A program made the translations under genes and the position numbers. A DNA stretch of 64,000 bases, from the sequence record OR805294.1; one strand, written 5' to 3'. Below the pieces are notes generated by a model. That model saw only the letters and a list, made by a program, of their open reading frames with translations, was not told where the DNA came from and ran no database searches. This document shows, piece after piece, positions 333 to 61,772 of this stretch; position 1 is the stretch's first letter; each line of letters opens with the position of its first letter.

Positions 333-621
333 TTATAGCAAAGTATATGAACCGAAAGGCGCACTATATAGAATTCGTCGCATTTCTGACGGTGCATTTA
401 GCACAGGGTCTTCCAGTCCGGCGTTTGTAACTTCTGGTCCGGGAAAAGTATTCAATACTTTAGGTAAACTTAGATCTCATCTTACTACTATTCGTAATAA
501 CCCGGTTTTACAAGACATATACAACGAATGTGAAATTGTTCAGTATGTAGAAGCTGACCAGCCAACATACACTCTAGCTGAACACACAGAATTACTTATA
601 CTTAAAAAGTTAACACAATAA
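316..621 (+). CDS. hypothetical phage protein
   Basis: TTG-start ORF overlapping the previous stop; normal protein composition. Confidence 0.6.
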   Translation: MTKKINYSKVYEPKGALYRIRRISDGAFSTGSSSPAFVTSGPGKVFNTLGKLRSHLTTIRNNPVLQDIYNECEIVQYVEADQPTYTLAEHTELLILKKLTQ

Positions 622-725
622 CGCGCTTTACTGCGCGTTAATTTGCGCGTATGCTGCAAAAACATGTAACACTAGAGCTTATATATGCTTATGCTTAAAA
701 AGCTGTATAACGCAATTTATGCGTT
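590..725. other. GA/TC-depleted island
   Basis: only one GA (675-676) and no TC in 136 nt; rich in GCGC/TGCA. Confidence 0.6.
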
Positions 726-1161
726 CCTTAACGAACTTGCTTATATAAAATATATAAGATTCTATGTCTTCTTTAAATGTGTTCATAAGCATCATGTATC
801 GGAAATACTTCTGTTAAGTAATCTAGCAGGTACGACTATAGGAGCATATAGATTTGAACGTCTCGGAAGCATGGATTATTGCACTATATCGATTGACATG
901 CCACTCGACGAGGATTATTTTATTGCCTGTAATACAAAAGGAATTATTTCTGTAGCAAAATGTAATCTCATATCAATGAATTTTTATGATTTTGGTACAC
1001 AATTATCAAACTATTACTTTTTTAAATACGACAATACATCGAATGGTTCGTTTTTTGTGTATCCATCCAAAAATTATTTAGTACATCCAGAAGTAATATC
1101 TTATATAAAGAAATATAATAATGAGAGTTTATATAAAAGAACAACGTATTTGCCGGGGTAA
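685..1161 (+). CDS. hypothetical protein (true start probably downstream)
   Basis: 158-aa ORF whose N-terminus lies in the GA/TC-poor island. Confidence 0.5.
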   Translation: MLMLKKLYNAIYAFLNELAYIKYIRFYVFFKCVHKHHVSEILLLSNLAGTTIGAYRFERLGSMDYCTISIDMPLDEDYFIACNTKGIISVAKCNLISMNFYDFGTQLSNYYFFKYDNTSNGSFFVYPSKNYLVHPEVISYIKKYNNESLYKRTTYLPG

Positions 1162-1360
1162 TGCCGAAATATACGATATAGTTATCAGACAGGAAGGTTA
1201 TTTAGAATTTCTAGAAGAAACAGAAACAGAATACACAGGATTTCTAAATGTTGTTAAAATATACAAATGCACCGATGGGTATCAAAAACGAATTCATACA
1301 ACAAAACAGAAGTTTTCTTTTCCGAAAGATTCTGACGAAATACTTATAATAGAATTATAG
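1121..1360 (+). CDS. hypothetical protein
   Basis: ORF coupled to its neighbours. Confidence 0.55.
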   Translation: MRVYIKEQRICRGNAEIYDIVIRQEGYLEFLEETETEYTGFLNVVKIYKCTDGYQKRIHTTKQKFSFPKDSDEILIIEL

Positions 1361-1370
1361 GAATTTCTGC

Positions 1371-1937
1371 ATGACTACAACTGAGGCAACTCTACTTAGT
1401 CTCGCTATCGCTGCAAGTTGTATGGTAGCAGACAAAATGTATTCTAAAGAATTTGAATACATTACTAACCTTAAAATAAAAGAAGAAAAACTAAAAGAAG
1501 AATTTGCTATAAATGATGAAGATAAAATAAAATCATACATAGCATTGTGTAAAAGAAGAAAGAATTGCAGGGCAGTAGCAGAAGCAATATATTATGAAGC
1601 GCGTAGTGAATCTAGGATAGGAATGCAAGGTGTAGCATTTACGATATTAAATAGAGCCATGAATCCTACTAGATGGCCCAACACCCCGTACAGTGTGGTT
1701 TACTATAAATGCCAATTTAGTTATACTTGCGACGGCAGTAGAAAACAAGGTTTTAAAGAAAAAGATAAATGGGATTTAGCTAATATAGTAGCATATAGGG
1801 CTATAAATAGACTATCTAGCGATCCCACCAACGGCGCTGATCATTATTATGCACCGCACAGAGTAAGCAAACCGTATTGGGCAAAGAAAATGAGAAAAAC
1901 TGCCAAATTAGGTAATCATGTGTTTTATAAATCGTAA
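1371..1937 (+). CDS. SleB-like cell wall hydrolase (Hydrolase_2)
   Basis: motifs AEAIYYEARSE, VAFTILNR, VVYYKCQFS, DPTNGADHYY, KLGNHVFY; hydrophobic N-terminus. Confidence 0.9.
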   Translation: MTTTEATLLSLAIAASCMVADKMYSKEFEYITNLKIKEEKLKEEFAINDEDKIKSYIALCKRRKNCRAVAEAIYYEARSESRIGMQGVAFTILNRAMNPTRWPNTPYSVVYYKCQFSYTCDGSRKQGFKEKDKWDLANIVAYRAINRLSSDPTNGADHYYAPHRVSKPYWAKKMRKTAKLGNHVFYKS

Positions 1938-1952
1938 TGAGGGGATTATACT

Positions 1953-2183
1953 ATGGTATGCAAAACAATAACAAAAGAAATGTTTGAAATGCAATATAAT
2001 ATAAGAAACTATTCTACCGTTGCTCATATATATATTAGCACAAGAGCAAATATAATAGAAATATATTATAAAACCCCGTTTAACCAGGGCATAGTATTGC
2101 AAAATTATTACGTTAACGAAGAATGCGACCAATATATACAGTCTTGTAGATTATATAGGGAATATGAAAAAAATAGAATATAA
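1953..2183 (+). CDS. hypothetical protein
   Basis: GAGG RBS upstream; coupled ORF. Confidence 0.55.
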   Translation: MVCKTITKEMFEMQYNIRNYSTVAHIYISTRANIIEIYYKTPFNQGIVLQNYYVNEECDQYIQSCRLYREYEKNRI

Positions 2184-11009: not shown

Positions 11010-12095
11010 ATGAATATTAATATATGGTATACTAACGTAGAACTACAAACAAAAACAAAGAAACAAGTACAGATTTGGCCTAAAAAAATTACTAGTCCCG
11101 AACCTTCCTACAGTTTTACAAATTGTGTAAGAAATGTACAAAACGTATTTGACGAAATACATATTTTAAAGGATATATCTATTAGACACGGAAGTGCGAA
11201 AGTAATGCAAGCAGCAATATATATAAAAGAGATAGATATGTATGGCAGATTTGATCTGAGGGCAGAATCTCTTGTAGAACTTTTACATACAAAAAACATT
11301 TCTGTTTCGGAAGGTGTAATTAAAGGTAAGTTTTCATTTGATTTTAGTTCTAGTAGTTATAGAATTATTCCGGCAGATAATGTAATTTCTGCCAGTGCAA
11401 AGAAAACTGCAAAAGAACTAATTCCATTTAGGGCATATAAAGATAAAGTAGGAAATTCCGTTATATACCTAGGGAAGGCATCAACTGAATGTGGCAAACA
11501 ATTATTTTTGACAATCGACTTGCCTAATCATCAAGAAGAAAAAGGTCTAGCAAAAATGGCAGTAGATCTTGTAGGCGGAAGATATGCATGGTATATAAAT
11601 TCTGATCATAATGTGTATAAGAACGAATTTGAAAAACTAAAATCATATGACGAAGACATGTACAATGTTATACTAAAATTAAAACAATTAGATGTAGGTG
11701 ATCTATCAAGTATATATGAAAAGTATTTCTTAAAGGCGTTTTATTATTGCACAAAAGAAGGACATCGTGTATTTGACCGCAGATTTGATGTAGCAACCGG
11801 GCGGACGCTAGGCACCGGAAGTTATCTATATAGACTGCAATATACAGTAGGTGTTCCTTCGTTGTATCAAGAAATTGACGATATTAGTGAAATGTTCGTC
11901 AGTAACGGAATTCCTGGAACATATGTAGCTATTCCCAAGAAATGGCTATCTTACAAATATATCAGTGCTAGCAACGCATTACCTTTATACGTAGACTTTA
12001 AAAATAAAATCGTCCGTAAAACAACTGTAACTGATGAAATTAACCCATATGAATACGATGATAGTTTTATAAATGAAGTATTAAATCATATATAA
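11010..12095 (+). CDS. hypothetical protein
   Basis: 361-aa ORF. Confidence 0.8.
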   Translation: MNINIWYTNVELQTKTKKQVQIWPKKITSPEPSYSFTNCVRNVQNVFDEIHILKDISIRHGSAKVMQAAIYIKEIDMYGRFDLRAESLVELLHTKNISVSEGVIKGKFSFDFSSSSYRIIPADNVISASAKKTAKELIPFRAYKDKVGNSVIYLGKASTECGKQLFLTIDLPNHQEEKGLAKMAVDLVGGRYAWYINSDHNVYKNEFEKLKSYDEDMYNVILKLKQLDVGDLSSIYEKYFLKAFYYCTKEGHRVFDRRFDVATGRTLGTGSYLYRLQYTVGVPSLYQEIDDISEMFVSNGIPGTYVAIPKKWLSYKYISASNALPLYVDFKNKIVRKTTVTDEINPYEYDDSFINEVLNHI

Positions 12096-12159: not shown

Positions 12160-12330
12160 AATTTAAATGCTTTTTACAGTTGCTGCAAAGCATGCAAAAT
12201 AACGCATACGTAAACAGCACAAAACACGCGCATAATGCGTTGTTTGTGTGCTTTGTGTATACTGCACTAGCATGCAAACTAGCATGCAAAATAACGCATT
12301 TTTGCAGCTATAACGCTAGGGGTACGCATT
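12160..12330. other. GA/TC-free island (171 nt)
   Basis: no GA or TC by hand scan; repeated AGCATGCAAAATAACGCAT. Confidence 0.8.
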
Positions 12331-14524: not shown

Positions 14525-14746
14525 CATATAAAAGTATGCGTATAATTTGCACATATAACGCAATAGCACAGCAACAAACAAAACGTAATAAAAAAATGTT
14601 GCAATAGCTTAAAAGTTTTAGTATAATAAGCACATAACAACGCAATACAGTTTACAAACAAAACGTAATAAAAAATGTTGCAATAGCTTAAAAGTTTTAG
14701 TATAATAAGCGTATAATGCAGCTTATATAACAAGTTAAAAACCCCT
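14525..14746. other. GA/TC-free island (222 nt) covering the tRNA-operon promoters
   Basis: no GA or TC by hand scan. Confidence 0.85.
14574..14710 (+). promoter_or_regulatory. tandemly duplicated sigma70 promoter (57-58 bp direct repeat) for the tRNA operon
   Basis: copies 14574-14631 and 14654-14710, each A-rich UP + TTGCAA-17-TATAAT. Confidence 0.85.
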
Positions 14747-14819
14747 CGGTAGCTCAGTTGGTTAGAGCGCGCGACTCATAATCGCTAGGTCACTGGTTCG
14801 AATCCAGTTCGAGGGACCA
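14743..14819 (+). tRNA. tRNA-CAU (Ile2/lysidine-type or elongator Met), copy 1
   Basis: full cloverleaf, anticodon arm CGCGA-CTCATAA-TCGCT, CCA end. Confidence 0.9.
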
Positions 14820-14841
14820 ATTTTAAGATGTTGTGCTTTTA

Positions 14842-14926
14842 GCCCGAGTGGTGAAATTGGTAGACACAGGAGACTTAAAATCTCCCGCTTCGCAGCGTAC
14901 CGGTTCGAGTCCGGTCTCGGGTACCA
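14842..14926 (+). tRNA. tRNA-Leu(UAA), copy 1
   Basis: cloverleaf with long variable arm, CCA. Confidence 0.95.
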
Positions 14927-15223: not shown

Positions 15224-15300
15224 GGGACTTTAGCTCAGTTGGTTAGAGCGCGCGACTCATAATCGCTAGGTCACTGGTTCGAATCCAGTAAGTCCCACCA
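15224..15300 (+). tRNA. tRNA-CAU (Ile2/lysidine-type or elongator Met), copy 2
   Basis: same D, anticodon and T arms as copy 1; acceptor GGGACTT/AAGTCCC; CCA. Confidence 0.9.
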
Positions 15301-15350
15301 ATTTTTATATACAAATCAAACTATACTTAAACTATATAATGAATGAATAT

Positions 15351-15435
15351 GCCCGGTTGGTGAAATCGGTAGACACAGGAGACTTAAAATCTCCCGACGA
15401 AAGTCGTGCCAGTTCGAGTCTGGCACCGGGCACCA
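15351..15435 (+). tRNA. tRNA-Leu(UAA), copy 2
   Basis: cloverleaf with long variable arm, CCA. Confidence 0.95.
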
Positions 15436-18323: not shown

Positions 18324-18352
18324 TTGACACAAGTATAATTATTTCGTATAAT
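18324..18352 (+). promoter_or_regulatory. consensus sigma70 promoter
   Basis: TTGACA-17-TATAAT. Confidence 0.85.
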
Positions 18353-24245: not shown

Positions 24246-24381
24246 AAAATGCGTTATTTTGCACGTTTGCATTATGCTATACGCAAGTTTGCAATAACGT
24301 GCAAACGCATGTATAACGCTAATACAGCTAACAATACAGTGCATAAAAACATGTACAGCATACTAGCGTTACAACGCATAT
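24239..24381. other. GA/TC-free island (143 nt)
   Basis: no GA or TC by hand scan; GC dinucleotides recur about every 6-17 nt. Confidence 0.8.
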
Positions 24382-39932: not shown

Positions 39933-40082
39933 ATGATCGATTGGGTATTTAAATTGTCTGCTAGTTGCTACGAAATAGACGGACAATATAGTGAGACAAT
40001 AAAAATATATAATTCATATTGTCTGTTAGGAACTATACAATATTATAATACTCAATTGAAAATAAATTTATATAAATTTTAA
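39933..40082 (+). CDS. 49-aa single-unit or truncated family member
   Basis: MIDWVFKLSASCYEI. Confidence 0.45.
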   Translation: MIDWVFKLSASCYEIDGQYSETIKIYNSYCLLGTIQYYNTQLKINLYKF

Positions 40083-40408
40083 TATTGTAGTGAGAATTCT
40101 TTTAAATAGGCATACTATATGAATGATCTATTACAATACCAACTCACATTATGTTCCATATCATTGCAGAAAGCTCGTTTTAAGTCAGGCAATGTGTATT
40201 ACATTCTAATTGAACGTAACGACAGCGGTAGGTATTCCCGAGATATAAAAATACTTAAATGATATGCGTATATTTGTAATATCACAAAATTGCATGACTA
40301 TCAGACTTTTTTATCATACATATTTCATTAAAGATGTAAATTATGATTCAATTTGTGTATTATATAAAACGAATAGCAGAATTGTAATACATCCGAGTTT
40401 TACAGTAG

Positions 40409-40597
40409 ATGAATATATTCGATCTGTCTTATAATTCTTCATTTATTTTGATGAAATCGAATAGAATATACATTAGTAATAATATCTATCGTGTAGGAGC
40501 TACATATGTATTACCTGCAATAACGAAATATATACATCAAATATTCTATGTAAACGCTGCAATATATAGATTTTTAGATACAGGTATACTAGTATGA
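40409..40597 (+). CDS. 62-aa single-unit family member
   Basis: MNIFDLSYNSSFI. Confidence 0.5.
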   Translation: MNIFDLSYNSSFILMKSNRIYISNNIYRVGATYVLPAITKYIHQIFYVNAAIYRFLDTGILV

Positions 40598-40782
40598 AAT
40601 TCAATATATTTAAATTGCAAAGAAGATGTCACATTATAAATTGTCATTTTTATGACATTCTTAGATTTTCAAAACCTACATATTTTCGAGATGCTGATAG
40701 AATAACTATATTTTCATTAATAGGTACTAATAGTATCGGAATTTACGCGGATATGTATAAAGGATATGCACAAACCATATGA
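40594..40782 (+). CDS. 62-aa single-unit family member
   Basis: MKFNIFKLQRRCHII; ATGA coupling. Confidence 0.55.
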   Translation: MKFNIFKLQRRCHIINCHFYDILRFSKPTYFRDADRITIFSLIGTNSIGIYADMYKGYAQTI

Positions 40783-41090
40783 TTGAAATATTAATATTTT
40801 CGAGTGTTAGTGATTATATTAATATAAGCCACGATATGGCACGGCTATATAATCTTAATGGTGTTAGTGAATTAATATTTGCATCAAAACCATACAAGTA
40901 TATTATATTAACTAATTTAAAAAATCGTATAGGTATATTCTGTATTTCAAATATAATAAGTGAAAGGGTGATGGGAGATATTACTAGTAATGAATGTTGG
41001 GCTTATCCTTGGCCTCCAGATACTGGCATAGATGTATATATTGATTTCCTGTATAAAAATGATGAGCTTTCTACTAAACACACAATATAA
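40779..41090 (+). CDS. paralog-array family member
   Basis: MIEILIFSSVSDYI / IGIFCISNII. Confidence 0.6.
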   Translation: MIEILIFSSVSDYINISHDMARLYNLNGVSELIFASKPYKYIILTNLKNRIGIFCISNIISERVMGDITSNECWAYPWPPDTGIDVYIDFLYKNDELSTKHTI

Positions 41091-41139
41091 CCATAGACAA
41101 ATAAGTGCATTATGCTAATATATACATGCTTACTAAACA

Positions 41140-41530
41140 GTTACTTGTTAAGTAAGTTAAAAAGTCTGTAACAGTGATGTTACAGGATACACAGGCAAAT
41201 ACGGTTGGAAGATGCTGTGTAAAGAACAAATATCCAGCTCATTCCTAGGCATTATAGCCTACACATTATATTTGAATGGGCATAAAAACTTCCAAAGAAC
41301 CTTCGAAATTTTCTCATAGGATAGTGTATTAGAAGGAATGCACTATCAGGAAGCTGTAGGTGATGGTTGCTATCCCAGACAGTCCTTTCTAAAATACTTT
41401 AATATGATATAAAGTTCTATGCAACCGTATACATGCTGTAAGATATTAGATTACACCATGTATTAAACGTAAAAGCAAAACCTTCAGTTAGTAATCTCGC
41501 AGTGAAGGGGGTAGGTGAGTGCTACCCAAA
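41140..41530 (+). ncRNA. candidate large structured ncRNA or leader A (~390 nt)
   Basis: ORF-free, at least 10 helices, 9-bp loop-distal pairing 41199-41207/41422-41430; possible promoter TAGACA(41094)-16-TAATAT. Confidence 0.65.
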
Positions 41531-41570
41531 CTCAACAAACAACTAATGGTCTAGAAAAGGTATAGTATAC

Positions 41571-41978
41571 ATGCAACATACTCACATTCGTTTCTACAAC
41601 GAAGAAACTCAACAGATCGATAACCGCCGTGGCGCTACTGTTGCCTGGGAAACCGCCGGCAACAAGATCCGTATTTCCGTAGCAGCATGTTCGGAAATGG
41701 ATAACTTCAACCGCAAGACCGGACGTGAACATGCTGCTAGCCGTCTCGAAAGCGGCGACTACATCGAGTTTAACGGCACCGAACTTCTTAATGCACAGAT
41801 GTCTTCTGTAAGTCATGTGCAGTCTGAAGGTCTCGTTCGTGCTATGTGCTTCTTGCTAGCACAAGGCAAAGGCGATCTATATTACCCGGCAAGCGAAGGT
41901 CAGCTTCGCAGCGAAGCCGAGTGCAATAGCTACAACGCCCTCGAGTACCTGAAACACCAGATGGGCATTCATCAGTAA
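41571..41978 (+). CDS. GC-rich, host-codon-adapted hypothetical protein
   Basis: GC rise confined to the ORF; RRGATVAW ... CSEMDNFNRKTGR. Confidence 0.85.
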   Translation: MQHTHIRFYNEETQQIDNRRGATVAWETAGNKIRISVAACSEMDNFNRKTGREHAASRLESGDYIEFNGTELLNAQMSSVSHVQSEGLVRAMCFLLAQGKGDLYYPASEGQLRSEAECNSYNALEYLKHQMGIHQ

Positions 41979-41991
41979 GTATTCGGCCATT

Positions 41992-42034
41992 CGGAATTGC
42001 GATTTAGGTTTTGGAATTCTAAATCGCAATTCCG
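41992..42034. terminator. perfect 16-bp inverted repeat
   Basis: CGGAATTGCGATTTAG-11nt-CTAAATCGCAATTCCG. Confidence 0.65.
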
Positions 42035-42254
42035 GTTTCCAAATTCAATTTTAGGCACAAACTCGGATCCGCATTTGCATTTTGCATTTACATTTTGTGT
42101 TCTGAGTGTATATGCAAAATGCAATCGCGCATGTTGTCGATGCATTGGCTAATCTTTTATTTTTGATAGTTTAGAAAAGATTAAGAACAGAAACTATCTG
42201 TAAATTAATAAAAATAACATTTACATTACATACACATATGCATATACTATATAC

Positions 42255-42532
42255 AAGTTATGCGCTGTTGCATACGTAAATACCTCCTATGTTGTTTAGA
42301 TATGTCGATTCTGGTATAACCAGATAGACCTAAGGATGATGCTAGTGATTCCTTAGTATTGTATATTCTAGCTGAGTATAAAGAGTAAGGGGCTTTATAC
42401 AAATAACAATTCCTTAGGCAAGATATACCGCTCCGTTGTGCTGACGAGCATAATTTGCCCAGATACAGAGCACGTGACTGGTCTGAGGAGCATTTATATC
42501 AGAAAGGCAGACTTATGTTTGCCTTTCTTTTT
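42255..42532 (+). ncRNA. candidate ncRNA B (~280 nt)
   Basis: TTTACA(42220)-17-TATACT promoter, nested helices, intrinsic terminator 42501-42532, no ORF. Confidence 0.7.
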
Positions 42533-42550
42533 GAGCAGATATTCTCTTAT

Positions 42551-42629
42551 TCACTTCCTTATTCATTTCTTTATTCATCTCTATTTCGTTTGTCACTTCC
42601 TTATTCATTTCTTTATTCATCTCTATTTC
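42551..42629. repeat. pyrimidine-rich 37-bp direct repeat x2
   Basis: TCACTTCCTTATTCATTTCTTTATTCATCTCTATTTC at 42551 and 42593. Confidence 0.85.
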
Positions 42630-42639
42630 ATTTGTTATT

Positions 42640-42757
42640 GCAAATAAGACTAATTCTTATTTGCGTTTGTAATTTCATTTGTTATTGCAAATAAGACTAA
42701 TTCGTATTTGCATTTGCAACGAAAAAGAATATGCAAATAATAACTAATCTTATTTGC
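42640..42757. promoter_or_regulatory. cluster of three 25-bp palindromic boxes (Fur-box-like)
   Basis: GCAAATAAGACTAATTCTTATTTGC at 42640, variants at 42687 and 42733. Confidence 0.75.
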
Positions 42758-42931
42758 ATTTGCACTGCCTAGTATATGGATTGGTAGCATACTTGGAAAT
42801 GGATAGTAAATAAGTAGTTGATTTGTTTATAAATTATACTTCTACACCATACAGATTGACCTTGCTATATATAGCTCGTGCGCGCGTATACAAGATGGTA
42901 AAAAATAATTTAAAAATATTTTAAAAAATGC

Positions 42932-43055
42932 TTGACTTTCCATTACTACGACCTTAAAGTGCGAACTGTAGACGCAGTGTGTAGAGCGCTACATAGTAAG
43001 CAACGCAGAAAGTAAACAAAAAATGCTTGACGCAATGCAAACTAGGCTCTACACT
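42932..43055 (+). promoter_or_regulatory. tandem strong sigma70 promoters
   Basis: A/T UP element + TTGACT-17-TAAAGT and TTGACG-17-TACACT. Confidence 0.8.
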
Positions 43056-43138
43056 GTATACAAGCTTAAGGGGTAGGTGCCCCGAAAGTGTAGTAAGTAA
43101 ACAACATAATCCTTCCATCAGCTACAGAGGTATACAAC

Positions 43139-43843
43139 ATGTCCGTACATATCACTCGTCAACGTACCGACAAACAGCACGTCCTGGCACTGGCAATCAA
43201 CGGTGTGGTCATCGGCCAGACTATGGCTACCTACACCACCCCGAGCAAGCGCACCTGGTCGGCGACCGCCGAAGTCGAACTGGCAGACGGCACCGTCGTA
43301 CAGTTCGAGCAGAAAGAAGTGTTCAGCGCGATCCGCATCACCCGCGAAATCGAGCAGGCGCTCGACGGCAAGGAACTGGCGGCCAAGTACACCCCGGAAC
43401 CGAAAGTTCCCGGGCAGAAGGGTCCGAAACCGCTCACCGACGAAAGCCGGCTCAGCAACGCGATCGCGATCGTCAAAGCGGCCATCACCCACACCGGCTT
43501 CGACGAAGCTACCCTGGTGTTCGACGGGGTCGACAAGGCCAACTTCGAGCAGAACAGCACCTCCGTCGGCAACAAGCTGCGTCGCCTGGGCTTCGTCTTC
43601 GAACTCGGCGCCGGCAAGGCGAACAGCGGCAAGGGCTTCCTGATCAACCGCAAAGCGCAGGCCGAGGCAGAAGCTGCCGAACGCAAGGCCAAGCGCGACG
43701 CCGAGAAGAAGGAACGCGAAGAAAAAGCGGCGGCTGCCAAGCGCGAAGCTGACGAACGCAAGGCCAAGCGCGAAGCCGAACGCGCCGAAAAGGTCGCTGA
43801 AAAGAACGCAGCGATCGCCGGGGCAGCGCAGGAAAGCAAGTAA
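43139..43843 (+). CDS. GC-rich early protein with K/A/E/R coiled-coil tail; paralog of 61964..62422
   Basis: AGAGGT RBS; all 11 Ile codons are ATC; shared NGVVxGQ...xFSAIRI domain; terminator at 43859-43886. Confidence 0.9.
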   Translation: MSVHITRQRTDKQHVLALAINGVVIGQTMATYTTPSKRTWSATAEVELADGTVVQFEQKEVFSAIRITREIEQALDGKELAAKYTPEPKVPGQKGPKPLTDESRLSNAIAIVKAAITHTGFDEATLVFDGVDKANFEQNSTSVGNKLRRLGFVFELGAGKANSGKGFLINRKAQAEAEAAERKAKRDAEKKEREEKAAAAKREADERKAKREAERAEKVAEKNAAIAGAAQESK

Positions 43844-45249: not shown

Positions 45250-45369
45250 ATTTTGCGGGGTATGCGTTACAAGCAATACACACATACTGCTTTTAAAATG
45301 CATGCTTACATGCGCTTTGTAGGGGGTTTAAAACATGCTTAAATTAGTTACCACTGTGCTATACAACGT
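45250..45369. other. GA/TC-free island (120 nt; 155 nt allowing one GA)
   Basis: hand scan. Confidence 0.75.
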
Positions 45370-45547
45370 CTGTGTAGCTTCGTTAATAATGATTGTGTTT
45401 GTATGTGGTATAAATTTAGTAATGTATATAGATAACAATACTGACAATAATCCAGTTGTTATCTTTATTTCCCTTCTATCGGTTATTTGGGGCGTTGCGC
45501 GGTTAAGCTATATGTTTGTTACTATCCAATTTCAGTCCAAGAAATAA
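45335..45547 (+). CDS. small membrane protein
   Basis: two hydrophobic segments. Confidence 0.55.
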   Translation: MLKLVTTVLYNVCVASLIMIVFVCGINLVMYIDNNTDNNPVVIFISLLSVIWGVARLSYMFVTIQFQSKK

Positions 45548-46804: not shown

Positions 46805-46833
46805 TTGACATTTGATGTGTATACTAGTATAAT
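46805..46833 (+). promoter_or_regulatory. perfect sigma70 promoter driving an ORF-free transcript
   Basis: TTGACA-17-TATAAT. Confidence 0.9.
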
Positions 46834-48963: not shown

Positions 48964-49551
48964 TTGCATAAAACTATATACAGGAGAAATGATATGTGCT
49001 ATGCATGGGATATCAAAGACGGGGATGATATCGAAGTCGAAGCAGTTATGGATGAACGAAGCTATGAGTGGACCGGCAAGTTACGTATCATCCAGTATCG
49101 GACCCTTCAATCAGCTCAGTGGCGGGTTATTATCAATATAGTAGAATTTTGGAGTCATTTAACTGAAAGTATATTGAACGAACTTGGCATAGAAGCTAAA
49201 CACATCACTAAAGGATATGCCACACTTAGTATGGTTCGTTTCCCGGATGTTGATTACCTATTTAGTGTAACACCCGATAATGCAGATTATGTAACTGTTA
49301 ACCACAGTGCAGTAGATATTTCTGACAGTTGGTTTGTTGCAAAAAATATAAAAGCAGTTATGTATCACTTGGGATCTGAAATCCAGATCACTCCGTGGTT
49401 TGTGCGTAAAGATAGTAGTGAGTCAAACTTCGATTGTATTGATCGATTAGTAGCTCTAGTAAAAGAGAATACTGATGTTGACACGTATCAGTACATCAAA
49501 GTAGGTTGTCCTCAAGACAAGTCATTTTACTTTGCGTGGATAGACAAATAA
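48964..49551 (+). CDS. hypothetical protein (start probably 48989)
   Basis: AGGAGA RBS. Confidence 0.75.
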   Translation: MHKTIYRRNDMCYAWDIKDGDDIEVEAVMDERSYEWTGKLRIIQYRTLQSAQWRVIINIVEFWSHLTESILNELGIEAKHITKGYATLSMVRFPDVDYLFSVTPDNADYVTVNHSAVDISDSWFVAKNIKAVMYHLGSEIQITPWFVRKDSSESNFDCIDRLVALVKENTDVDTYQYIKVGCPQDKSFYFAWIDK

Positions 49552-49640: not shown

Positions 49641-49892
49641 ATGAAAGAAGAATTTGAATCGTGGATTCGGACTCGTTCTTCAGCGCCGCTTGCGTATAAT
49701 GCAGTCGACGACTTGTACCTCAACCCGCATGTTCAGGCACGCTACGAGGCTTGGAAAGCCAGTCGTGTGGCACTAAGGGTAGTGTTGCCGAAATCCCAGA
49801 TGGCGTTAGATTACGCGCCCAAAACAAAAGTTTTCAATACAATCGACATGGAATTGGCCCTCCGGCAAGCCGGAATAGAGGTGAAGCCATGA
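49641..49892 (+). CDS. Pseudomonas temperate-phage-like hypothetical protein
   Basis: EEFESW ... YEAWKASRVALRVVLP pattern; GC shift. Confidence 0.7.
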   Translation: MKEEFESWIRTRSSAPLAYNAVDDLYLNPHVQARYEAWKASRVALRVVLPKSQMALDYAPKTKVFNTIDMELALRQAGIEVKP

Positions 49893-50098
49893 AGACATTT
49901 TTGAAGATGCTCGCATATTGCGTGCTTGGGACATCCATTGGCATTGCCATCAGCCAATGGTTCATCTTCGTCCTAGAGATGAGGCTTGGCGCCGTGCTCT
50001 GGTACATCGTTGGCCTTGGTCCTGTGCTGCTTGTGTTTTGCATTTTGGGCAGCTTCCTTCAATGGCTGATTCATAAGAACTTGGAGAAAAAGCAATGA
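49889..50098 (+). CDS. small membrane protein
   Basis: ATGA-coupled start at 49889; two TM segments. Confidence 0.7.
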   Translation: MKTFLKMLAYCVLGTSIGIAISQWFIFVLEMRLGAVLWYIVGLGPVLLVFCILGSFLQWLIHKNLEKKQ

Positions 50099-50169
50099 CC
50101 GACCACGCAGAGCTGCGGAGGCTGGCTAAAGAAGTGATCCGAATTGAACGAAATGAGGATGCAGCATGA
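50095..50169 (+). pseudogene. 24-aa remnant MTDHAELRRLAKEV...
   Basis: ATGA-coupled at both ends; start typical of Ead/Ea22-like genes. Confidence 0.5.
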
Positions 50170-50681
50170 GCATTGACTGGAGCAAGGCACCAGAGGGCGC
50201 GACTCATTGGGAGCCAACAGGACTTGAGTTCAATGAAAGATGGATGAAGAAAGAAGGGAATGGCTGGTTCTTTTGGGGGCTAGGTGCAGAATGGAAATAC
50301 GGGGGTGATGTATCCGCAGAGCGTGAGGCGACATTCGAGGCTAGACCGCAAGAGGCCTGGGACGGCCAGGGTCTACCGCCGGTTGGCCTGATGGTGGAGT
50401 GGAAGGCAGGCCTTGATCACGACTGGCAGCGCGTAACCGTGCTTGCCTACGCCAATGGCGACGCGTGGTTTCAGCCCGAGGATGGCCCGTCTTTCATCGT
50501 CGGCAACCCGGCAAACTTCAGGCGTATCCGCACCCCCGAGCAGTTGGCCGCCGAGGAGCGGGAAAAGGCGATTAATCAGATGATTTCTGATGCTGGATAC
50601 GTAGATCCGAAGATTGGCACATTTGTGGCTATGCGCAATCTCTACGACGCCGGCTACCGGCGCCGGGAGGAAGGGAAATGA
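50166..50681 (+). CDS. Pseudomonas phage hypothetical protein (IDWSKAPEGATH family)
   Basis: MSIDWSKAPEGATHW ... WDGQGLPPVG ... FRRIRTPEQLAAEEREKA. Confidence 0.8.
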   Translation: MSIDWSKAPEGATHWEPTGLEFNERWMKKEGNGWFFWGLGAEWKYGGDVSAEREATFEARPQEAWDGQGLPPVGLMVEWKAGLDHDWQRVTVLAYANGDAWFQPEDGPSFIVGNPANFRRIRTPEQLAAEEREKAINQMISDAGYVDPKIGTFVAMRNLYDAGYRRREEGK

Positions 50682-50944
50682 GCAGACTGACAGCTGAGCA
50701 AGCCCGTGACATAGCGCGAGCGAAAGACGATGTCGATACTATCCTCAACGACATCGCCAAAACAGCCGCAGAAGGAAAGTACGTGTACACTACCCGCGCC
50801 TATGGGTTCGGCACAGGCGGCGGACGGCGCAGCGACGCGATCCTCAAAGTGTTGCGTAGCCTCGGCTACGACTGTGCGGTGCATGCTGAGGGACGCCAGT
50901 CTGTCGACCTGTGGCTTGAAGTGAAATGGGGAGACAAGCCATGA
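50678..50944 (+). CDS. hypothetical protein
   Basis: coupled GC-rich ORF. Confidence 0.75.
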   Translation: MSRLTAEQARDIARAKDDVDTILNDIAKTAAEGKYVYTTRAYGFGTGGGRRSDAILKVLRSLGYDCAVHAEGRQSVDLWLEVKWGDKP

Positions 50945-51360
50945 CTAACAACCCCGGAGATTCAAAAATGATCGTAGAAAACGCCAAGCAAGCCGCCGAA
51001 GACTTCAAAACTTCCATGGCTAAGATTTTTCCGAATTACATCGCCGGTGCGTCGGTTTCCGATAACCTTGGTCCGGCGATGACAATTTCGTTTGCGAATG
51101 TCGGTTGCGCTTCCGAAGCCCCTAACAGCATTCTGATAAATGCGAGCGGTTACATGCGCTTTATGATGCATTTGTGTGACAATTGCGGGAATGTATTGCC
51201 AGAAGGTTCGCCGGTAGAAATTGAGCTGCTAATGTGGTCTATCCCCTATCGTTCGGAAGTAATCAAGTTCCGCAAGATCAAGGGCAAGACACCAGCCGAA
51301 GCTATGCAAAAGCTAGTCAAGTGGTTTGAAAAAAACGCCGAAGCTATCCGGGGTCTGTAA
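50941..51360 (+). CDS. hypothetical protein
   Basis: ATGA-coupled; C-terminal FRKIKGKTPAEAMQKLVKWF. Confidence 0.75.
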   Translation: MTNNPGDSKMIVENAKQAAEDFKTSMAKIFPNYIAGASVSDNLGPAMTISFANVGCASEAPNSILINASGYMRFMMHLCDNCGNVLPEGSPVEIELLMWSIPYRSEVIKFRKIKGKTPAEAMQKLVKWFEKNAEAIRGL

Positions 51361-51384
51361 TGGTCTCCACGTAGGACACGCAGA

Positions 51385-51786
51385 ATGAACATTGTGTTGG
51401 ACAAATTGCTGTTTGGCGGTTTCATCGACCAGCACCGCAATGAACTTGCCCAGCAACAACTGAATCGGTTGTTTGCCAAGTACGGTGAGCCGAAGATTGG
51501 TATCACACGGGCATGCTTTCTATCTAAGCATTACGTCCTGAAGTTCCCGATTAATGACAGGGGTGAGCGGTGCAACGATTGGGAAGGTAGCTGTTCCGGC
51601 AGCTACTTGGCACGCGGACGCTGGCTAGAAATCGGAGGCTTCATTTGCGTCATGCAAGAGCGTTTGGTTGAAGTGGATTGGAAGAACAACACCCATGCAA
51701 ACTTTCCTGATTGGGTAGGCAGCATAGATTGTGGTCAAGTCGGCTACGATAAACATGGCGTTCTGAAAGCGTATGACTTCGGGTGA
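51385..51786 (+). CDS. miniature protein-kinase-like fold protein
   Basis: G..R..F, VLKFP, NDWE, D..Q.G, terminal AYDFG. Confidence 0.55.
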   Translation: MNIVLDKLLFGGFIDQHRNELAQQQLNRLFAKYGEPKIGITRACFLSKHYVLKFPINDRGERCNDWEGSCSGSYLARGRWLEIGGFICVMQERLVEVDWKNNTHANFPDWVGSIDCGQVGYDKHGVLKAYDFG

Positions 51787-51789
51787 AGC

Positions 51790-52074
51790 ATGACCATCAA
51801 TTTGTTTGTCGTCAACATAAAGAACGAACCTATCCCAACCGACCACAAGTCGATACTCCGCTATCTTGGCCTTAGCCTGCACACGCAAGGCCGTCGCGTA
51901 TCTGCCAAATTCAGCAGCGGTAAGTTGAAGCTGAACAACTACAACATCGAATTTTTTCACATGGCGGACGAGAACGATGAACTTCGCCGCCTTTGCTCCT
52001 GCGCTAAGCAATATAACCTCAGCATGACACTGCGCAGAATGATTGACGCAGTCCTTAAAAGAGACAAGCCATGA
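51790..52074 (+). CDS. hypothetical protein
   Basis: coupled ORF. Confidence 0.65.
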   Translation: MTINLFVVNIKNEPIPTDHKSILRYLGLSLHTQGRRVSAKFSSGKLKLNNYNIEFFHMADENDELRRLCSCAKQYNLSMTLRRMIDAVLKRDKP

Positions 52075-52259
52075 CCGACATTAAAAAGCTGAAGGAGTTA
52101 GCGGAACGGGCTACTCCTGGTCCCTGGTCTGCGTCTTGGAAGGAAGGCGATGACCATTTGGGGCGAATTGCTTACTTCGTGTCAACTGGTCAATACAACA
52201 TCACAAAAGAAACAGTCTTCGACATAGTGAATGTGGTTCCCGAAAATGTGTGCTCCTGA
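52071..52259 (+). CDS. Ead/Ea22-like protein, short or truncated
   Basis: LKELAERATPGPW. Confidence 0.65.
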   Translation: MTDIKKLKELAERATPGPWSASWKEGDDHLGRIAYFVSTGQYNITKETVFDIVNVVPENVCS

Positions 52260-52401
52260 CGCATCTACAGCATGGGAGGCTGCCTTTGTGTTTTTCACAC
52301 TCGCAGGAGGCCCATTGCTTTGCTGTATTGCAATTCTTCTAGCGCCGGAGCCATGCCGACAGACCAAACACACCCAGCGATAAGCGGGAAGAGAGGAATC
52401 C

Positions 52402-52506
52402 ATGCCAACCCTTTTTGAGTTCGCTGCAATGTGGGGAATTCTGCTTCTGACGATGTTTTTGCCGATCCGTTTGAATCGTCGCCCTATTCAACCGCAAGAC
52501 GCCTGA
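52402..52506 (+). CDS. 34-aa membrane peptide
   Basis: GAGAGGA RBS; MPTLFEFAAMWGILLLTMFLPIRL. Confidence 0.6.
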   Translation: MPTLFEFAAMWGILLLTMFLPIRLNRRPIQPQDA

Positions 52507-52522
52507 CAGGCAGGAGAACAGA

Positions 52523-52810
52523 ATGAGCATCGTTAAAGTTGCCACTTTCCGAAACGCTGTCGCCCACCTTTTCCGCGTGGTCAATGTCGACTATCACGCT
52601 TGCGTCCGCCCGGCTGAGCTGCGCAACTGGCAAAGCATCGCTATCCGCGTTCTAGCCGAAGTCAATGCTCTAGAATGCAAGCGAGCCAACCAGGATGACC
52701 GTGATTACCAGCGCTGCACTGTCGATGCTGCCCGCGAACGTATAAGCCAAGCCGACTTGCGGCTCGCCCAGCTCGAAGCTGCCGGTGACCTCAAAGAAGA
52801 CAAAAAATAA
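52523..52810 (+). CDS. hypothetical protein
   Basis: AGGAGA RBS, GC-rich. Confidence 0.8.
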   Translation: MSIVKVATFRNAVAHLFRVVNVDYHACVRPAELRNWQSIAIRVLAEVNALECKRANQDDRDYQRCTVDAARERISQADLRLAQLEAAGDLKEDKK

Positions 52811-52863
52811 TTGAAGTAAAGTGAAAGAAATATCATTATGATCTACTAGAAGGAGCAGCATAC

Positions 52864-53094
52864 ATGAGCCTTAAATATAACGGATATGTCTTTAACATCG
52901 GTATCCTTGGCCAAAACGAAGCTATTAGTGAATACGCCTATCCCACCGATGATCCCGAAAGTGATAAAAAGAAAGCTTTTTTGGCTGCAATGGCAAAATT
53001 CGTCGAATCAGATGATTTCGAGAAATTTACTAATCAAATGTATAACAATTTCTCGATTAATGTTCAAGCCCTAGTTTCTACGTCTACGGAGTAA
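52864..53094 (+). CDS. hypothetical protein
   Basis: AGGAG RBS. Confidence 0.75.
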   Translation: MSLKYNGYVFNIGILGQNEAISEYAYPTDDPESDKKKAFLAAMAKFVESDDFEKFTNQMYNNFSINVQALVSTSTE

Positions 53095-53456
53095 ATTAAT
53101 GAACATCTTAAAACATATATATTGGGCTGTGCGTTATGGTGATTGGAATATAGGATGGGATCCGACTTGGGGTAGCAAACCTGATGAACCTTTTATTTGG
53201 TGTAAGCCGATATATTATGACGGACATCATTGCTACCTGCGAGTAGGCTACTTTTGGATAGGAGTAACATACTAACATTTACAATATATCTATAAAAGAA
53301 TATATCAGTAACACAGTTGTTAAATTGCAAACACTAATTAATCTTATTTGCATTTGCTATCTTGTATAATAGAAACGACTTCTAAACATGGATATGAGAT
53401 GGAAAACTTAGATAGGATCTCTGTTACAAATTTTTGAGTTACAATACATAGTAGTT

Positions 53457-55239: not shown

Positions 55240-55369
55240 ATGCTTTATAACGCATAAATTTACATAGCTAATACATACATATTGCTAACGTTAAAAAGCG
55301 CGTTATATAGCTTATAATTGCATATTGTGCAATGCATTTGTTGGTGTTATATTAAGTATGCGCAACAAT
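55240..55369. other. GA/TC-free island (130 nt)
   Basis: hand scan. Confidence 0.8.
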
Positions 55370-55696: not shown

Positions 55697-56055
55697 AAAA
55701 AGCTCTTTCAAGTGTATTAGGTATCATTGTTCTGTTACTAGGCGTATTTATGGTAGATAATCCTACAATAGGATTAATGCTAGGAGGGTTAGTAGGTAGT
55801 TATATTTTCAGCATAGGCGGAGTAATTCTATGTGTTATATCGTTTATGATATTTGCACTTGCCTTTGTTGAGATGAAATGAATAAATGCATAAACAGGTA
55901 CTGTATAAAAATAAAGAAAGATTAGATTTTGTCTGTAATAGTTATATATTTTTCAATGTAATATTCTTCATTTTCATTGCATGCGTTACAAAATAGATCA
56001 CAAAAAGTTTTAAAATTCAGTTTACAGCATGCATAGTTTTACGTATTATAAACAC

Positions 56056-56360
56056 ACAAAGCAATACAGCATAACGCATTGTAAGCAACACTAAACGGGA
56101 GACACCGTCCCGCAAGCAGCCCGCCCGCGATGTTCGCGGGCTGCGGCAAACAGGTGTACAAGGTCTAGTAACGTGGAAGGCGCAGCATACCTTTCCCTAA
56201 ATCGGAAATCGGTCAATGACGTACCTGCCCCTGGACACTGCTAGACCTTGCTGCTACAGGCGGGACAGCTACAAAGGTACACTGTATGTATCTATGCTTT
56301 ACCCCGCTTTGTAGCAGGTCTTAAAACGGTCTACTGGCATATGCCTTAGTGCTAGTAGGA
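56056..56360 (+). ncRNA. candidate GC-rich structured ncRNA D (~300 nt)
   Basis: TTTACA(56021)-17-TATTAT promoter, no + strand ORF, 9-12 bp helices. Confidence 0.7.
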
Positions 56361-56819
56361 ATCATTAACCTAAAACTATTATATGCTTCCTGGAGGTGAA
56401 GAGTATGCCGCCGCAGCATTAAATATACATTATGATGATGATAATTATGAATGCCGAAACACCGCTTCGATTCGTTTAAAAGACAGATGTCTGAATCGAA
56501 TGTTTTTGGGCAAAAAGGTCCCTTAGATGGGATTTTTTTGCGGCTGTTAACTAGCAAACGCGAATTAATCTTATTTGCAATTTAAGAAAAATACCAGTTG
56601 ACTGTAGCTTGTTAACATAGTACATTTAACTCATAAATCCGCAGGAGTAGCAGTTATGTCGCTGAAAAAGAAACTTTTAAATTCTGTGCAGATTAAATAT
56701 TTCGGCAACATTTATACTTACATTTATGATGCCGTTCATGACGTTATTTATTTCGATAACCAGCAAATGTCTTATGCCGAATTTGAAGAGGCAGTAGACT
56801 GTAAGCTAGGAGAAGTTCT

Positions 56820-57746: not shown

Positions 57747-57756
57747 GGAAGTAGTA

Positions 57757-59158: not shown

Positions 59159-59677
59159 TTGAATTCACACATAATAGTATGTATAGTTTTAATATATAAG
59201 ATACAAACATACGAGGTTGTAAAAATGAAACTTCATAAAATGAATGGTAATATTTTTATTCGGTTTGAAGTAGATACTTCATCGGATAATTTTGTAGAAA
59301 AAGTTTACGAAGAAATTATGCAGCTTCCTGCAAAATTGTATTTCGAAAAGATAGAACGTAGAACTTGGTTCTGTAGCTTTTACACAGGCTACGACGAATT
59401 GGTGGAATTCGTCAATGAAATAAAAGACAGAGTTAGTTCAGAAGGTGTTTTCTTTGACAGGCCATTGCAGCTAACTCTTATCAATTCGGGCGGGGTAGAA
59501 GTAAATATTTCCGATATAGAACCGGATCTTCACTATCTCTTTGATAACGATATTACAACTACAAAACTTATCTCTATGGAAGGATCCTGCAATATGGTAG
59601 ATTTGCTCATGTGCGAATGGGTACCTATTAGCATTCGAACTTCTATTGCTAAGGCATTTACTGACAAATTTTTATAA
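59159..59677 (+). CDS. hypothetical protein (start probably 59225)
   Basis: GAGGT RBS. Confidence 0.7.
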   Translation: MNSHIIVCIVLIYKIQTYEVVKMKLHKMNGNIFIRFEVDTSSDNFVEKVYEEIMQLPAKLYFEKIERRTWFCSFYTGYDELVEFVNEIKDRVSSEGVFFDRPLQLTLINSGGVEVNISDIEPDLHYLFDNDITTTKLISMEGSCNMVDLLMCEWVPISIRTSIAKAFTDKFL

Positions 59678-59688
59678 TAAAATACCTG

Positions 59689-60417
59689 TTGACGCATATA
59701 GCAATATGCGCAATAATATGCACGAAAGCAAGAACAGATCCAAATAACCTTTTTATAAGAGATTATATTATGTCTAAGTATCTTTCTTTTAGCGTAAACG
59801 TAGACATGGACAACACTGGTCTGTTGAAATGGTTGCGTCCTACTACCGGTCGGTTGGATGGATTCGAAGAGAGTGTTAAAAACTTCGTTTCTTCTTTCCG
59901 CTCAGTCGAGTCGAGCCCTACGGTGTTTCAAGTTTACGATGACGATGATCAGCCGTTGCAAGTAAGCAACATGAGCTGCTTCTTCCGATACTTTCCGGTG
60001 TATGGTATGTGCCTTGCTCCGGGTTCGATGGTCAGGGACCAATATCGTCGGGAGATCCTCGACTATACTACTGACGAGTTCTGTTCATTCAGTAACTACT
60101 TCAGTGACGGCAAGGCCATCCGCGGCGGGGCAGTCTTGTGGTGGGATGTAGAGAAAGACTTGGTATGGTCTGTTAGTCCCGAATTGATTCGCCTCGTATA
60201 TGCCCGCTTGCAAAGCGATATGGACATCGGGTGGTATCATCTCGGGCAAGAAGTTATGGCTGTAGTTCCCCTTCGTTCGTATCCCAACGATGTTGCCCGA
60301 TGGAAATATGTACAAGGTAATATCTGCGGCATCGATGATCAAGTGAGCATTCGCAGCAATGTCGACGGTCGAGTCACCCGGCTTAATTGGGAATACATCG
60401 TGACCCAAGGGGGATAA
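59689..60417 (+). CDS. hypothetical protein (start probably 59770)
   Basis: TTGACG-17-AATAAT promoter at 59689; LWWDVEKDLVWS. Confidence 0.8.
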   Translation: MTHIAICAIICTKARTDPNNLFIRDYIMSKYLSFSVNVDMDNTGLLKWLRPTTGRLDGFEESVKNFVSSFRSVESSPTVFQVYDDDDQPLQVSNMSCFFRYFPVYGMCLAPGSMVRDQYRREILDYTTDEFCSFSNYFSDGKAIRGGAVLWWDVEKDLVWSVSPELIRLVYARLQSDMDIGWYHLGQEVMAVVPLRSYPNDVARWKYVQGNICGIDDQVSIRSNVDGRVTRLNWEYIVTQGG

Positions 60418-60418
60418 T

Positions 60419-60646
60419 ATGGGCGGCCTTGCTAATATAGTTGCATGCATAGCTTCTATTGTTGCAATTGTTACTGGAAATATCTGGTATTTTATCGCAC
60501 TGTTGCTATGCACAGCATTTATGTCGCCCGAACGAAAAGGATCATTAATTGATGTATTTTCGGTCATTGTCGGGATTGGTGCTATATTTAACGGAGACAT
60601 TGCATGGGGCATAGTGTTCATAGCATTAGTGATAATAGTTAAATAG
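60419..60646 (+). CDS. small membrane protein with internal repeat
   Basis: GNIWYFIAL / GDIAWGIVFIAL; terminator follows. Confidence 0.7.
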   Translation: MGGLANIVACIASIVAIVTGNIWYFIALLLCTAFMSPERKGSLIDVFSVIVGIGAIFNGDIAWGIVFIALVIIVK

Positions 60647-61502
60647 AAAGGAAGGGGTTAAACCCCTTCCTTTTATTGTAGGTGTTAAATGTCATCAATT
60701 TTTTATCTTAGCAAATGGACAGAATACATAGTAATTTTAAACAATAAGAGAATAAGGTTAAGTACAGCGAAATATTCTATAGGATATGTATCACTAGAAA
60801 CACCTCGTCGCACATTTTACTGGACACTTTTTAAATGAAATACAATAATCGTATCTAAATAGCTACCTACCTTTATATCAAAAACCATTCTATGAAATAT
60901 ATTTCCCAAATCATATTACAAAAGTTATATTTGAATTTTGGATTCTTATCTCAACCTTGCATTGCAATATAAAATGCGAATATGAGTGTGCTGTATGTGT
61001 TTGCATACGCATGTACATACGCATAAACGTATTAAGAAATACAATTTATTTTATCCTATACGATTATCTTTAATACCTATATGTTGTTTGATAATAAAAG
61101 TATAATAAGTAAAAGATATTATCCATTGTATAATGGTTTTAATATATTTCGCTGTAGTGTCGGATGTATATATTTTTCATATGATAAAATGTCATTTATT
61201 CACGACATATTCATGCAAACCGTTTCGTTATTCCTTACAACGTTATTAATGTTTTTACTTATAACTCCGTTATATCATATAGGATTGAAAAATCCAGTCA
61301 ATATAACTACATTTGTTTCGTGTTTAATAATAACCATTCTTATAACAAGTTATTATTTTATGTCAGTTTTGACTTATATATTCTGTATTACCGTTCAGTC
61401 AATAATTTATAAAAGAAAGAAATAATTTAGTTTCTTTTTCATTATCAATATCTTTTTCTTTTTCAATATCTTTTTCTTTATCTTTTTCTTTATCTTTTAT
61501 CA

Positions 61503-61617
61503 TTGCAAATACAAATAATAATTATTCTTATTTGTATTTGCGATTAATTCTTATTTGTAATTGCGATTAATTCTTATTTGCTACAATAGATAGAATAAGA
61601 ATAATTCACATTTGCAA
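61503..61617. promoter_or_regulatory. second cluster of Fur-box-like palindromes
   Basis: AATAATAATTATTCTTATT, 2x GCGATTAATTCTTATTTG, AATAAGAATAATTCACATT (61594). Confidence 0.7.
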
Positions 61618-61772
61618 TGCCGCTAAAAGCGCTGTAAGCGCTGTATGTTGCGTAGTAGTGCTAAGCAATGCGTTAGTACAGCTACGCGCACAAACGCTGT
61701 TATGCGCGCTTGTAGCGCGTTTTAGGGCCCATGCGCATGCGTATACCTGTAGCTTTACATAGTAAAATGCAG
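61607..61772. other. GA/TC-free island (166 nt)
   Basis: hand scan; GCGC-rich. Confidence 0.85.

Follow-up and report, generated by a model that had tools for sequence, protein, structure and literature searches.

Islands lacking the GA/TC dinucleotide in control regions of Pseudomonas phage Ettore match the DNA modification target proposed for its relative PA5oct

The closest described systems to the locus reported here are the 7-deazaguanine modifications of the phages iggy and CAjan. In iggy, which infects Pseudomonas aeruginosa, dPreQ0 is confined to GA and occupies >97% of these sites (PMC10484667), and in CAjan, which infects Escherichia coli, preQ0 is placed at GA and GGC. The window analyzed here is a stretch of 64,000 nucleotides (nt) from Pseudomonas phage Ettore (OR805294.1, positions 124001-188000), a PA5oct-like jumbo myovirus of P. 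aeruginosa, and it carries dispersed islands of 80-220 bp from which GA and its complement TC are missing. These islands are control DNA that has, with a probability of about 0.6, been purged of the phage's own modification target for protein access. Ettore resembles iggy and CAjan in the G-then-A context and in FolE, QueD and, on weaker matches, QueE-type genes, and iggy shares its host; the restriction resistance of PA5oct DNA at GA-containing sites is a further similarity. Ettore differs in that GG is also seemingly avoided and in that DpdA and QueC were undetected in it. Term searches of the iggy and CAjan papers found no mention of local target-free islands in either, and no description of such islands was found among the full-text search hits on deazaguanine, the GA motif, PA5oct, promoters and transcription. 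The modification context (as a published inference) and GA-specific deazaguanine modification are already known; what is new is a local, regulatory avoidance of the target of the phage's own enzyme.

In restriction-site (palindrome) avoidance, as in Ettore, selection removes a short word because it is the substrate of an enzyme. The classical form affects the 4-6-bp sites of host enzymes across the whole genome, whereas in Ettore a dinucleotide is missing only in about ten discrete 80-220-bp regulatory islands and the enzyme is presumably the phage's own. Whole-genome under-representation of the classical kind was not found for GA/TC, the frequency of which is near normal. Vertebrate CpG islands and Dam-GATC promoters are comparable in being promoter-proximal and defined by a modification target, with the modification state of the promoter affecting binding, but CpG islands keep the target and escape methylation and Dam-regulated promoters keep GATC as a switch, whereas the Ettore islands have the target deleted. 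The T4-type early promoter regions with their promoter early stem-loop (PeSL) cassettes are likewise AT-rich, with many small genes, hairpin-plus-promoter modules and -35 elements such as GTTTAC. We know of no dinucleotide exclusion for PeSLs. Identity of the islands with PeSL-like mobile cassettes was considered and rejected, as the indel and alignment breakpoints among the Wroclawviruses, the genus of Ettore, do not fall at the islands.

The genus Wroclawvirus is the only one in the family Arenbergviridae, and the Ettore genome is about 288 kb with 33% GC. The window contains a dense small-gene region and a 12-tRNA array, and from about 34014 onward it matches the 39-kb terminal repeat of PA5oct; the PA5oct record has its position 1 at about 34014, where the direct terminal repeat has its left end, and the second half of the window is therefore in the packaged genome twice. 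RNA sequencing (RNA-seq) of PA5oct shows this repeat to be the main early-transcribed block (gp34-gp105) and the DNA-metabolism genes to have middle and late transcription, and rifampicin blocks PA5oct (Lood et al. 2020, PMC7318152), indicating that PA5oct depends on the host RNA polymerase; the same study lists 32 promoters. The islands and the elements within them are as follows, with a strand given where one applies.

590-725: GA/TC-poor island with one GA at 675/676 against 14.6 GA+TC expected; contains a GC-rich hairpin (619-640) and extends 41 nt into the coding sequence starting at 685.
12160-12330: island of 171 nt, free of G-purine steps over 12160-12319, downstream of the gene 11010-12095; contains a hairpin (12226-12251) and two direct copies of the 19-mer TGCAAAATAACGCATTTTT; intergenic in the annotation of phage Callisto, a small open reading frame (ORF), gp386, in that of PA5oct.
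12189-12207 (+), 12281-12299 (+) and, inverted, 24245-24263 (-): copies of the 19-mer, a candidate protein-binding site.
14525-14746: longest island, 222 nt, ending at tRNA-Met (which starts at 14743), the first of the 12-tRNA array.
14574-14631 and 14654-14710: tandem duplication inside the longest island.
14599-14627 (+): sigma70-type promoter P1, TTGCAA-17-TATAAT.
14678-14706: P2, the duplicate of P1, with an overlapping third -10 box at 14712-14717.
24239-24381: island of 143 nt without GA, GG, TC or CC, overlapping the first 44 codons of ORF 24249-24548, which could instead start at the in-frame ATG at 24417 with its GGAG Shine-Dalgarno sequence.
41097-41165: short run of 69 nt free of G-purine steps, just 5' of PA5oct gp34, the first gene of the early block.
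42198-42285: island of 88 nt with a promoter, TTTACA (42220)-17-TATACT (42243); the PA5oct non-coding RNA (ncRNA) ncRNA001 maps to 42275-42510.
45250-45369: island of 120 nt, 5' of the gene 45335-45547 and entering it by 35 nt; the ribosome-binding site of this gene is GGGGG and not GGAG.
55240-55369: intergenic island of 130 nt with a promoter, TTAAAA (55291)-16-TATAAT (55313), 5' of the gene ending at 55696.
56018-56099: island of 82 nt with a promoter, TTTACA (56021)-17-TATTAT (56044); PA5oct ncRNA002 maps to 56068-56522.
61607-61772: island of 166 nt with 49% GC, rich in GCGC palindromes and hairpins, 5' of the gene 61964-62422; the curated PA5oct annotation has it as intergenic, lying between gp85 and gp86.

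The initial annotation had located these runs, other than 41097-41165, by hand scan, and all of its coordinates reproduce exactly, including the single GA in 590-725. Six GA/TC-free runs in the window measure 120-222 bp and three measure 82-88 bp. The claim that such runs are very unlikely by chance is borne out by Markov null models of order 1, 3 and 5 (150 simulations each), which give about 0.01 runs of at least 120 nt per window (0.007-0.013) with a mean longest run of 83 nt, against six observed, and nine observed of at least 80 nt. From the composition of each island 5-21 GA/TC are expected, with probabilities of finding none that range from 6e-3 to 6e-10. Elsewhere GA/TC is common, as had been stated: the window holds 6132 occurrences (density 0.096, compared with 0.10 genome-wide), and some 60 further non-coding segments in it show ordinary densities of 0.04-0.16. 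The close relative Deifobo (OR805293.1) stood in for the parts of the genome outside the window, and the combined scan gives six runs of at least 100 nt in the 64-kb window and four in the other 224 kb (Deifobo 52286, 110519, 262498 and 274516), all of them at operon boundaries. The first 50 kb, with the replication and nucleotide-metabolism genes, has no GA/TC-free run of 70 nt or more.

The depletion has a defined orientation. With the GA at 675/676 set apart, the pooled islands contain no GA against 71.6 expected and no TC against 65.3 (together 0 against 137). The initial annotation named GA/TC only, and that pair is indeed fully lacking, but GG (15 against 37.8) and CC (9 against 42.1) are depleted as well, with observed-to-expected ratios (o/e) of 0.40 and 0.21 and a total of 24 against 80. 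AG/CT (o/e 0.78) and AA/TT (1.03 and 1.05) are retained as it had described, GC is strongly enriched (3.09) and CA/TG is enriched (1.38 and 1.35). Runs without GA, GG, TC and CC reach 218, 160, 143, 105 and 104 nt, where the null has a mean maximum of 62 nt and a highest value of 90 nt, and neither the mirrored set (AG, GG, CT, CC) nor the GA+AG set has outlier runs. Among the ten strand-symmetric dinucleotide classes only GA/TC is outlying apart from AT and TA, whose long AT-free and TA-free runs are explained by high-GC stretches at 43-44 kb and 62 kb. The gene at 43139-43843 is itself GC-rich (55%), is open in several frames, has stretches of up to 331 nt lacking AT or TA and corresponds to PA5oct gp38, a virion protein by mass spectrometry that has no Pfam match. 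A 12-nt tandem repeat, AAGGCGGCAGCA, at 62361-62438, covering the 3' end of the gene 61964-62422 and the sequence just beyond its stop, has one extra unit in Callisto and forms a 78-nt GA/TC-free run that is compositional and different in kind from the islands. The islands are 5'-G-purine-free, and the depletion is orientation-specific and symmetric across both strands, suggesting that it arises at the level of double-stranded DNA.

Comparison of the Ettore islands with their own 150-nt flanks, made against PA5oct and Callisto (97-99% identical to Ettore), shows that the islands diverge about half as fast as the flanks, at 1.9% compared with 3.9% (p = 0.001) and 1.2% compared with 2.7% (p = 0.002). 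Only 1 of 27 distinct island substitutions creates a GA or TC, where 5.8 are expected (P = 0.008). The check in related phages that the initial annotation had proposed thus turned out in its favor, the homologous islands all being GA/TC-free with the exception of one Callisto variant in the island with the tRNA promoters (14723 and 14726, some 20 nt before its 3' end). Purifying selection on the islands is shown by these comparisons. They also bear on mutational erosion, in which a TC-specific cytosine deaminase or error-prone copying of a modified base would have removed GA/TC wherever selection is weak. A mild overall under-representation in the window (o/e 0.87 for GA and 0.86 for TC) agrees with such a process, but the strong depletion is confined to the islands, the edges of which are sharp, and the islands are more conserved than their flanks. 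The AA/TT products that erosion would leave are not enriched, GC being enriched instead, and the normal GA/TC content of the other non-coding segments means that the islands are not neutral decay. Erosion is effectively refuted.

The same dinucleotides are implicated by digestion of PA5oct virion DNA, which is resistant to EcoRI, XbaI, BsaI, BmrI and ApaLI and is cut by HindIII, DraI, BsgI, FspI and NdeI (Yee et al. 2025 preprint, PMC12191111). Yee et al. inferred from this that a G within a GA and/or GG motif is modified, drew attention to the QueE and QueD genes and reported that END nucleases specific for modified G restrict PA5oct (PMC12191111). The sites of EcoRI, XbaI, BsaI and BmrI contain GA or GG and those of the cutting enzymes contain neither. 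ApaLI (GTGCAC) has only three sites in the 288 kb of Deifobo plus window, so the resistance to this enzyme is uninformative on the motif. The ORF 48994-49551, which has no Pfam match, shares 97% DNA identity with PA5oct gp52, identified as anti-END1, an inhibitor of nucleases that sense hypermodified DNA (END-nuclease preprint, PMC12191111). As the islands lack the dinucleotides that the PA5oct digests implicate, they are stretches without the modification target, and this link between islands and modification is well supported. The modification of Wroclawvirus DNA is reported at 5'-G-purine steps, with GA taken as certain from the restriction resistance and GG as probable, and the sequence is an independent pointer to a G-purine target, sharper than the published "GA and/or GG".

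The modified base is most likely a 7-deazaguanine derivative. The search for DNA-modifying enzymes that had been suggested was productive in part: FolE (PF01227, 1e-59) and two QueD/PTPS genes (5e-30 and 9e-22) have clear Pfam matches, and a QueE-like radical-SAM gene has weaker matches (Fer4_12, 0.003; tblastn, 4e-5 to iggy QueE) together with its annotation and the preprint. In Deifobo (OR805293.1) FolE, QueD, a ClpX-like AAA+ protein, an S21-like protein and the second QueD are clustered at 39741-43179, and the QueE-like gene lies 55 kb from this cluster at 98650-99522. DpdA, QueC and Mom-like enzymes were all undetected by tblastn, a small hidden Markov model (HMM) and Pfam scans of about 40 proteins. 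For DpdA, tblastn and a two-sequence HMM against all ORFs of at least 120 amino acids gave a best E of 0.17, and none of ten neighboring proteins has a TGT domain. The enzyme that places the base could be a divergent DpdA or a different enzyme.

The target could also be avoided because the modified base is the adenine of GA, installed by Mom-like enzymes, rather than the guanine. The Mom enzyme of phage Mu modifies A within (C/G)A(C/G)NY, a context that takes in GA. In PA5oct, five Mom-like ("momylating") enzymes are predicted besides a deazaguanine system with incorporation (Iyer et al. 2021, PMC7824862). CA/TG, the other step in which A follows G or C, is enriched in the islands, the GG/CC depletion points to a G-centered G-purine target, the nucleases that target PA5oct are specific for modified G, and the Mom-like genes were not located among the proteins scanned; an adenine modification is accordingly quite unlikely.

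A second P. aeruginosa phage shows a related pattern. The GA/TC-free runs of iggy measure 171, 161, 157, 152 and 108 nt against a null maximum of 110 nt, and its terminal non-coding regions (MN029011.1, 59949-60628), upstream of the first gene of a long leftward gene block, have 10 GA/TC where 62 are expected. The o/e values there are 0.05 for GA, 0.21 for TC, 1.58 for GG and 1.26 for CC, the last two undepleted as expected for a motif that is GA only. Two G9 runs are present in the same region. T5, which is unmodified, has a longest GA/TC-free run of 73 nt, and all 27 of its annotated sigma70 promoters carry 4-9 GA/TC; phage 14-1 of P. aeruginosa, in which T is modified in the TG context, has neither GA/TC-free nor TG/CA-free islands. 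The islands are thus neither an effect of the host nor a general property of promoters, and in two P. aeruginosa phages that are unrelated to each other the phenomenon goes together with modification of G at GA.

The initial annotation had offered bendable, protein-wrapping DNA as an alternative, to which Z-DNA-prone purine-pyrimidine alternation can be added. GC, CG, CA/TG and TA steps are abundant in the islands, as are short palindromes, which would fit a structural feature of this kind. The mirrored dinucleotide set has no outliers, and no structural model known to us excludes GA and GG yet allows AG. A structural origin also leaves the match to the restriction-resistance motif and the GA/TC-only depletion of iggy unexplained, and the unmodified T5 promoters show nothing alike. 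The alternative found no specific support, and we regard it as highly improbable.

Clear sigma70-type promoter sequences are present in four of the nine islands (14525, with two or three, 42198, 55240 and 56018). The GA-free -35 boxes that had been noted are confirmed, TTGCAA in the island at 14525 and TTTACA in those at 42198 and 56018, with TTAAAA at 55240. At 42198 and 56018 the ncRNA starts annotated from RNA-seq are 12-20 nt downstream of the transcription starts predicted from the promoters. In the four promoter islands the GA/TC-free zone runs from about -40/-110 to +30/+45 relative to the predicted start, approximately the polymerase footprint plus the initially transcribed region. Islands lie directly 5' of the tRNA array, of ncRNA001 and ncRNA002 and of several early-block genes. 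Several are transcribed leaders or ncRNA 5' ends, and one gene start within an island has GGGGG in place of GGAG, both of which would fit selection on transcripts that lack GA and UC and so evade a sequence-specific endoribonuclease. The absence of both GA and TC from one strand has the symmetry of double-stranded DNA, and the islands reach 40-110 nt upstream of the predicted starts into untranscribed -35 and upstream DNA; selection at the RNA level is very unlikely.

Avoidance of the modified guanine by control DNA would work as follows. In 7-deazaguanine derivatives the C7 substituent points into the major groove, through which sigma region 4.2 reads the -35 element. In the modified DNA of the phage the substituent would sit in that groove, and we infer that it impairs protein binding and that this impairment is the selective cause. 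Since the incoming virion DNA would be modified and the phage would need the host RNA polymerase, the segments read by the sigma70 holoenzyme or by regulators (promoters, operators, initially transcribed regions and terminator hairpins) would be kept free of GA/TC and largely free of GG/CC. The islands would then offer an ordinary major groove on a modified genome, and the island promoters would have TTGCAA or TTTACA because the consensus TTGACA contains the target GA. The initial annotation had proposed modification or damage at TC/GA with protected windows for protein access, and the first part is supported by the PA5oct digests, the FolE/QueD/QueE-like genes and the orientation match with GA/GG; we infer protein access on modified DNA as the purpose of the islands, with promoters in four of nine.

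Several observations weigh against this account. The islands at 590, 12160, 24239, 45250 and 61607 (five of nine) have no recognizable sigma70 promoter. Six of the nine are intergenic in the RNA-seq-curated PA5oct annotation, and three overlap small ORFs in it (gp386, gp432 and gp44). Eleven perfect TTGACA-N16-18-TATAAT promoters lie outside the islands, all with GA. The Wroclawvirus modification motif rests on ten restriction digests of PA5oct, and no DpdA or QueC homologue was found by tblastn with the iggy and CAjan queries. Three of the iggy runs are in low-complexity coding DNA and may be compositional, and CAjan has neither outlier runs nor a depleted intergenic region, so that not every modified phage shows the effect.

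A generic promoter scan of the AT-rich region gave no excess (99 compared with 91 in shuffles). Two of the eleven perfect promoters are in the window (TTGACA-17-TATAAT at 18324-18352 and 46805-46833) and nine elsewhere in the genome, compared with about one expected by a rough estimate from base frequencies, and they precede the ssb, primase and exonuclease genes, among others. GA in a promoter is therefore not forbidden, and the modification may merely be tolerated there. A possible but rather unlikely alternative is a timer, in which the modification delays the TTGACA promoters until replication yields daughter DNA that is not yet modified. These promoters would be poorly recognized at first because they necessarily carry a modified G at -33. 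It is similarly tentative that the island promoters fire from the incoming, fully modified genome to give the tRNAs, the two abundant ncRNAs and the early-block genes. Such a timer, if true, would account for textbook-strength sigma70 promoters driving middle and not early PA5oct genes, and the principle may extend to other GA-modifying Pseudomonas phages such as iggy.

The five islands that lack a promoter are richer in GC and have hairpins, direct repeats and palindromes. All-against-all blastn-short did not show the islands to be homologous copies of one element; they share only 12-21-nt motifs, and there is the one internal tandem duplication. The shared words are 13-21-mers, including the 19-mer, that are common to several islands in both orientations. 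Short motifs are strongly enriched, with 9 of 18 genome copies of ATAACGC and 5 of 7 of TATAACGC inside islands, and the palindrome CGCAAATTTGCG is repeated in the Deifobo 110519 island. These shared and enriched motifs would fit islands that are arrays of regulator sites whose motifs (ATAACGCA, TGCAAAATAACGCAT, CGCAAATTTGCG) happen to lack GA/TC, the depletion being a by-product unrelated to modification. The motifs are, however, a minority of the 1258 island bases, the spacers are equally GA/TC-free and the islands are otherwise unrelated in sequence, and the restriction-resistance match, the GG/CC depletion and the GA-only depletion in iggy are left unexplained; on balance arrays of this kind are an unlikely origin. 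The 15-mer TGCAAAATAACGCAT gave 77 single matches, never two in one contig, as chance predicts for the size of the collection, and the protein next to the island at 12160 has no relatives in IMG/VR. ATGCTT is enriched in the islands, and MotA-box-like middle promoters with TGCTT were considered for this reason and rejected, several of the island copies being ATG-CTT starts with no -10 box at a fixed distance.

Partial, motif-specific hypermodification of phage DNA has to our knowledge been studied almost wholly as a shield against restriction and CRISPR. If they are indeed purged of the phage's own target, the islands suggest that the phage pays for this shield in its own gene expression and that selection has reshaped its genome to meet that cost. 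An uncharacterized phage would then reveal its modification motif in its sequence alone, as dinucleotide "deserts" in control regions, and the islands would map the protein-read regulatory DNA of a 288-kb genome in which most genes are of unknown function. How host RNA polymerase and regulators handle 7-deazaguanine-modified templates would likewise become a testable question.

Minor features of the window concern the tRNA array and a variable module. An Rfam scan matched the 12 tRNAs and nothing else. The array holds two copies of a tRNA-Met and tRNA-Leu(TAA) pair (14743-14926 and 15224-15435), with 59-nt blocks that are 100% identical. Three tRNAs with a CAT anticodon (14743, 15224 and 17350) are called tRNA-Met, and some may be lysidine-dependent tRNA-Ile. 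A PP-loop TilS-like gene (24551-25162; ATP_bind_3, 2e-36) directly follows the island at 24239. A GC-rich (49-56%) module at about 49700-53100 is variable or missing among the Wroclawviruses, and its segment at about 50095-52529 has about 87% identity to the 56-59-kb P. aeruginosa phages phita81A, 5371, 5399 and vB_Pae_U7, which suggests a recent horizontal transfer.

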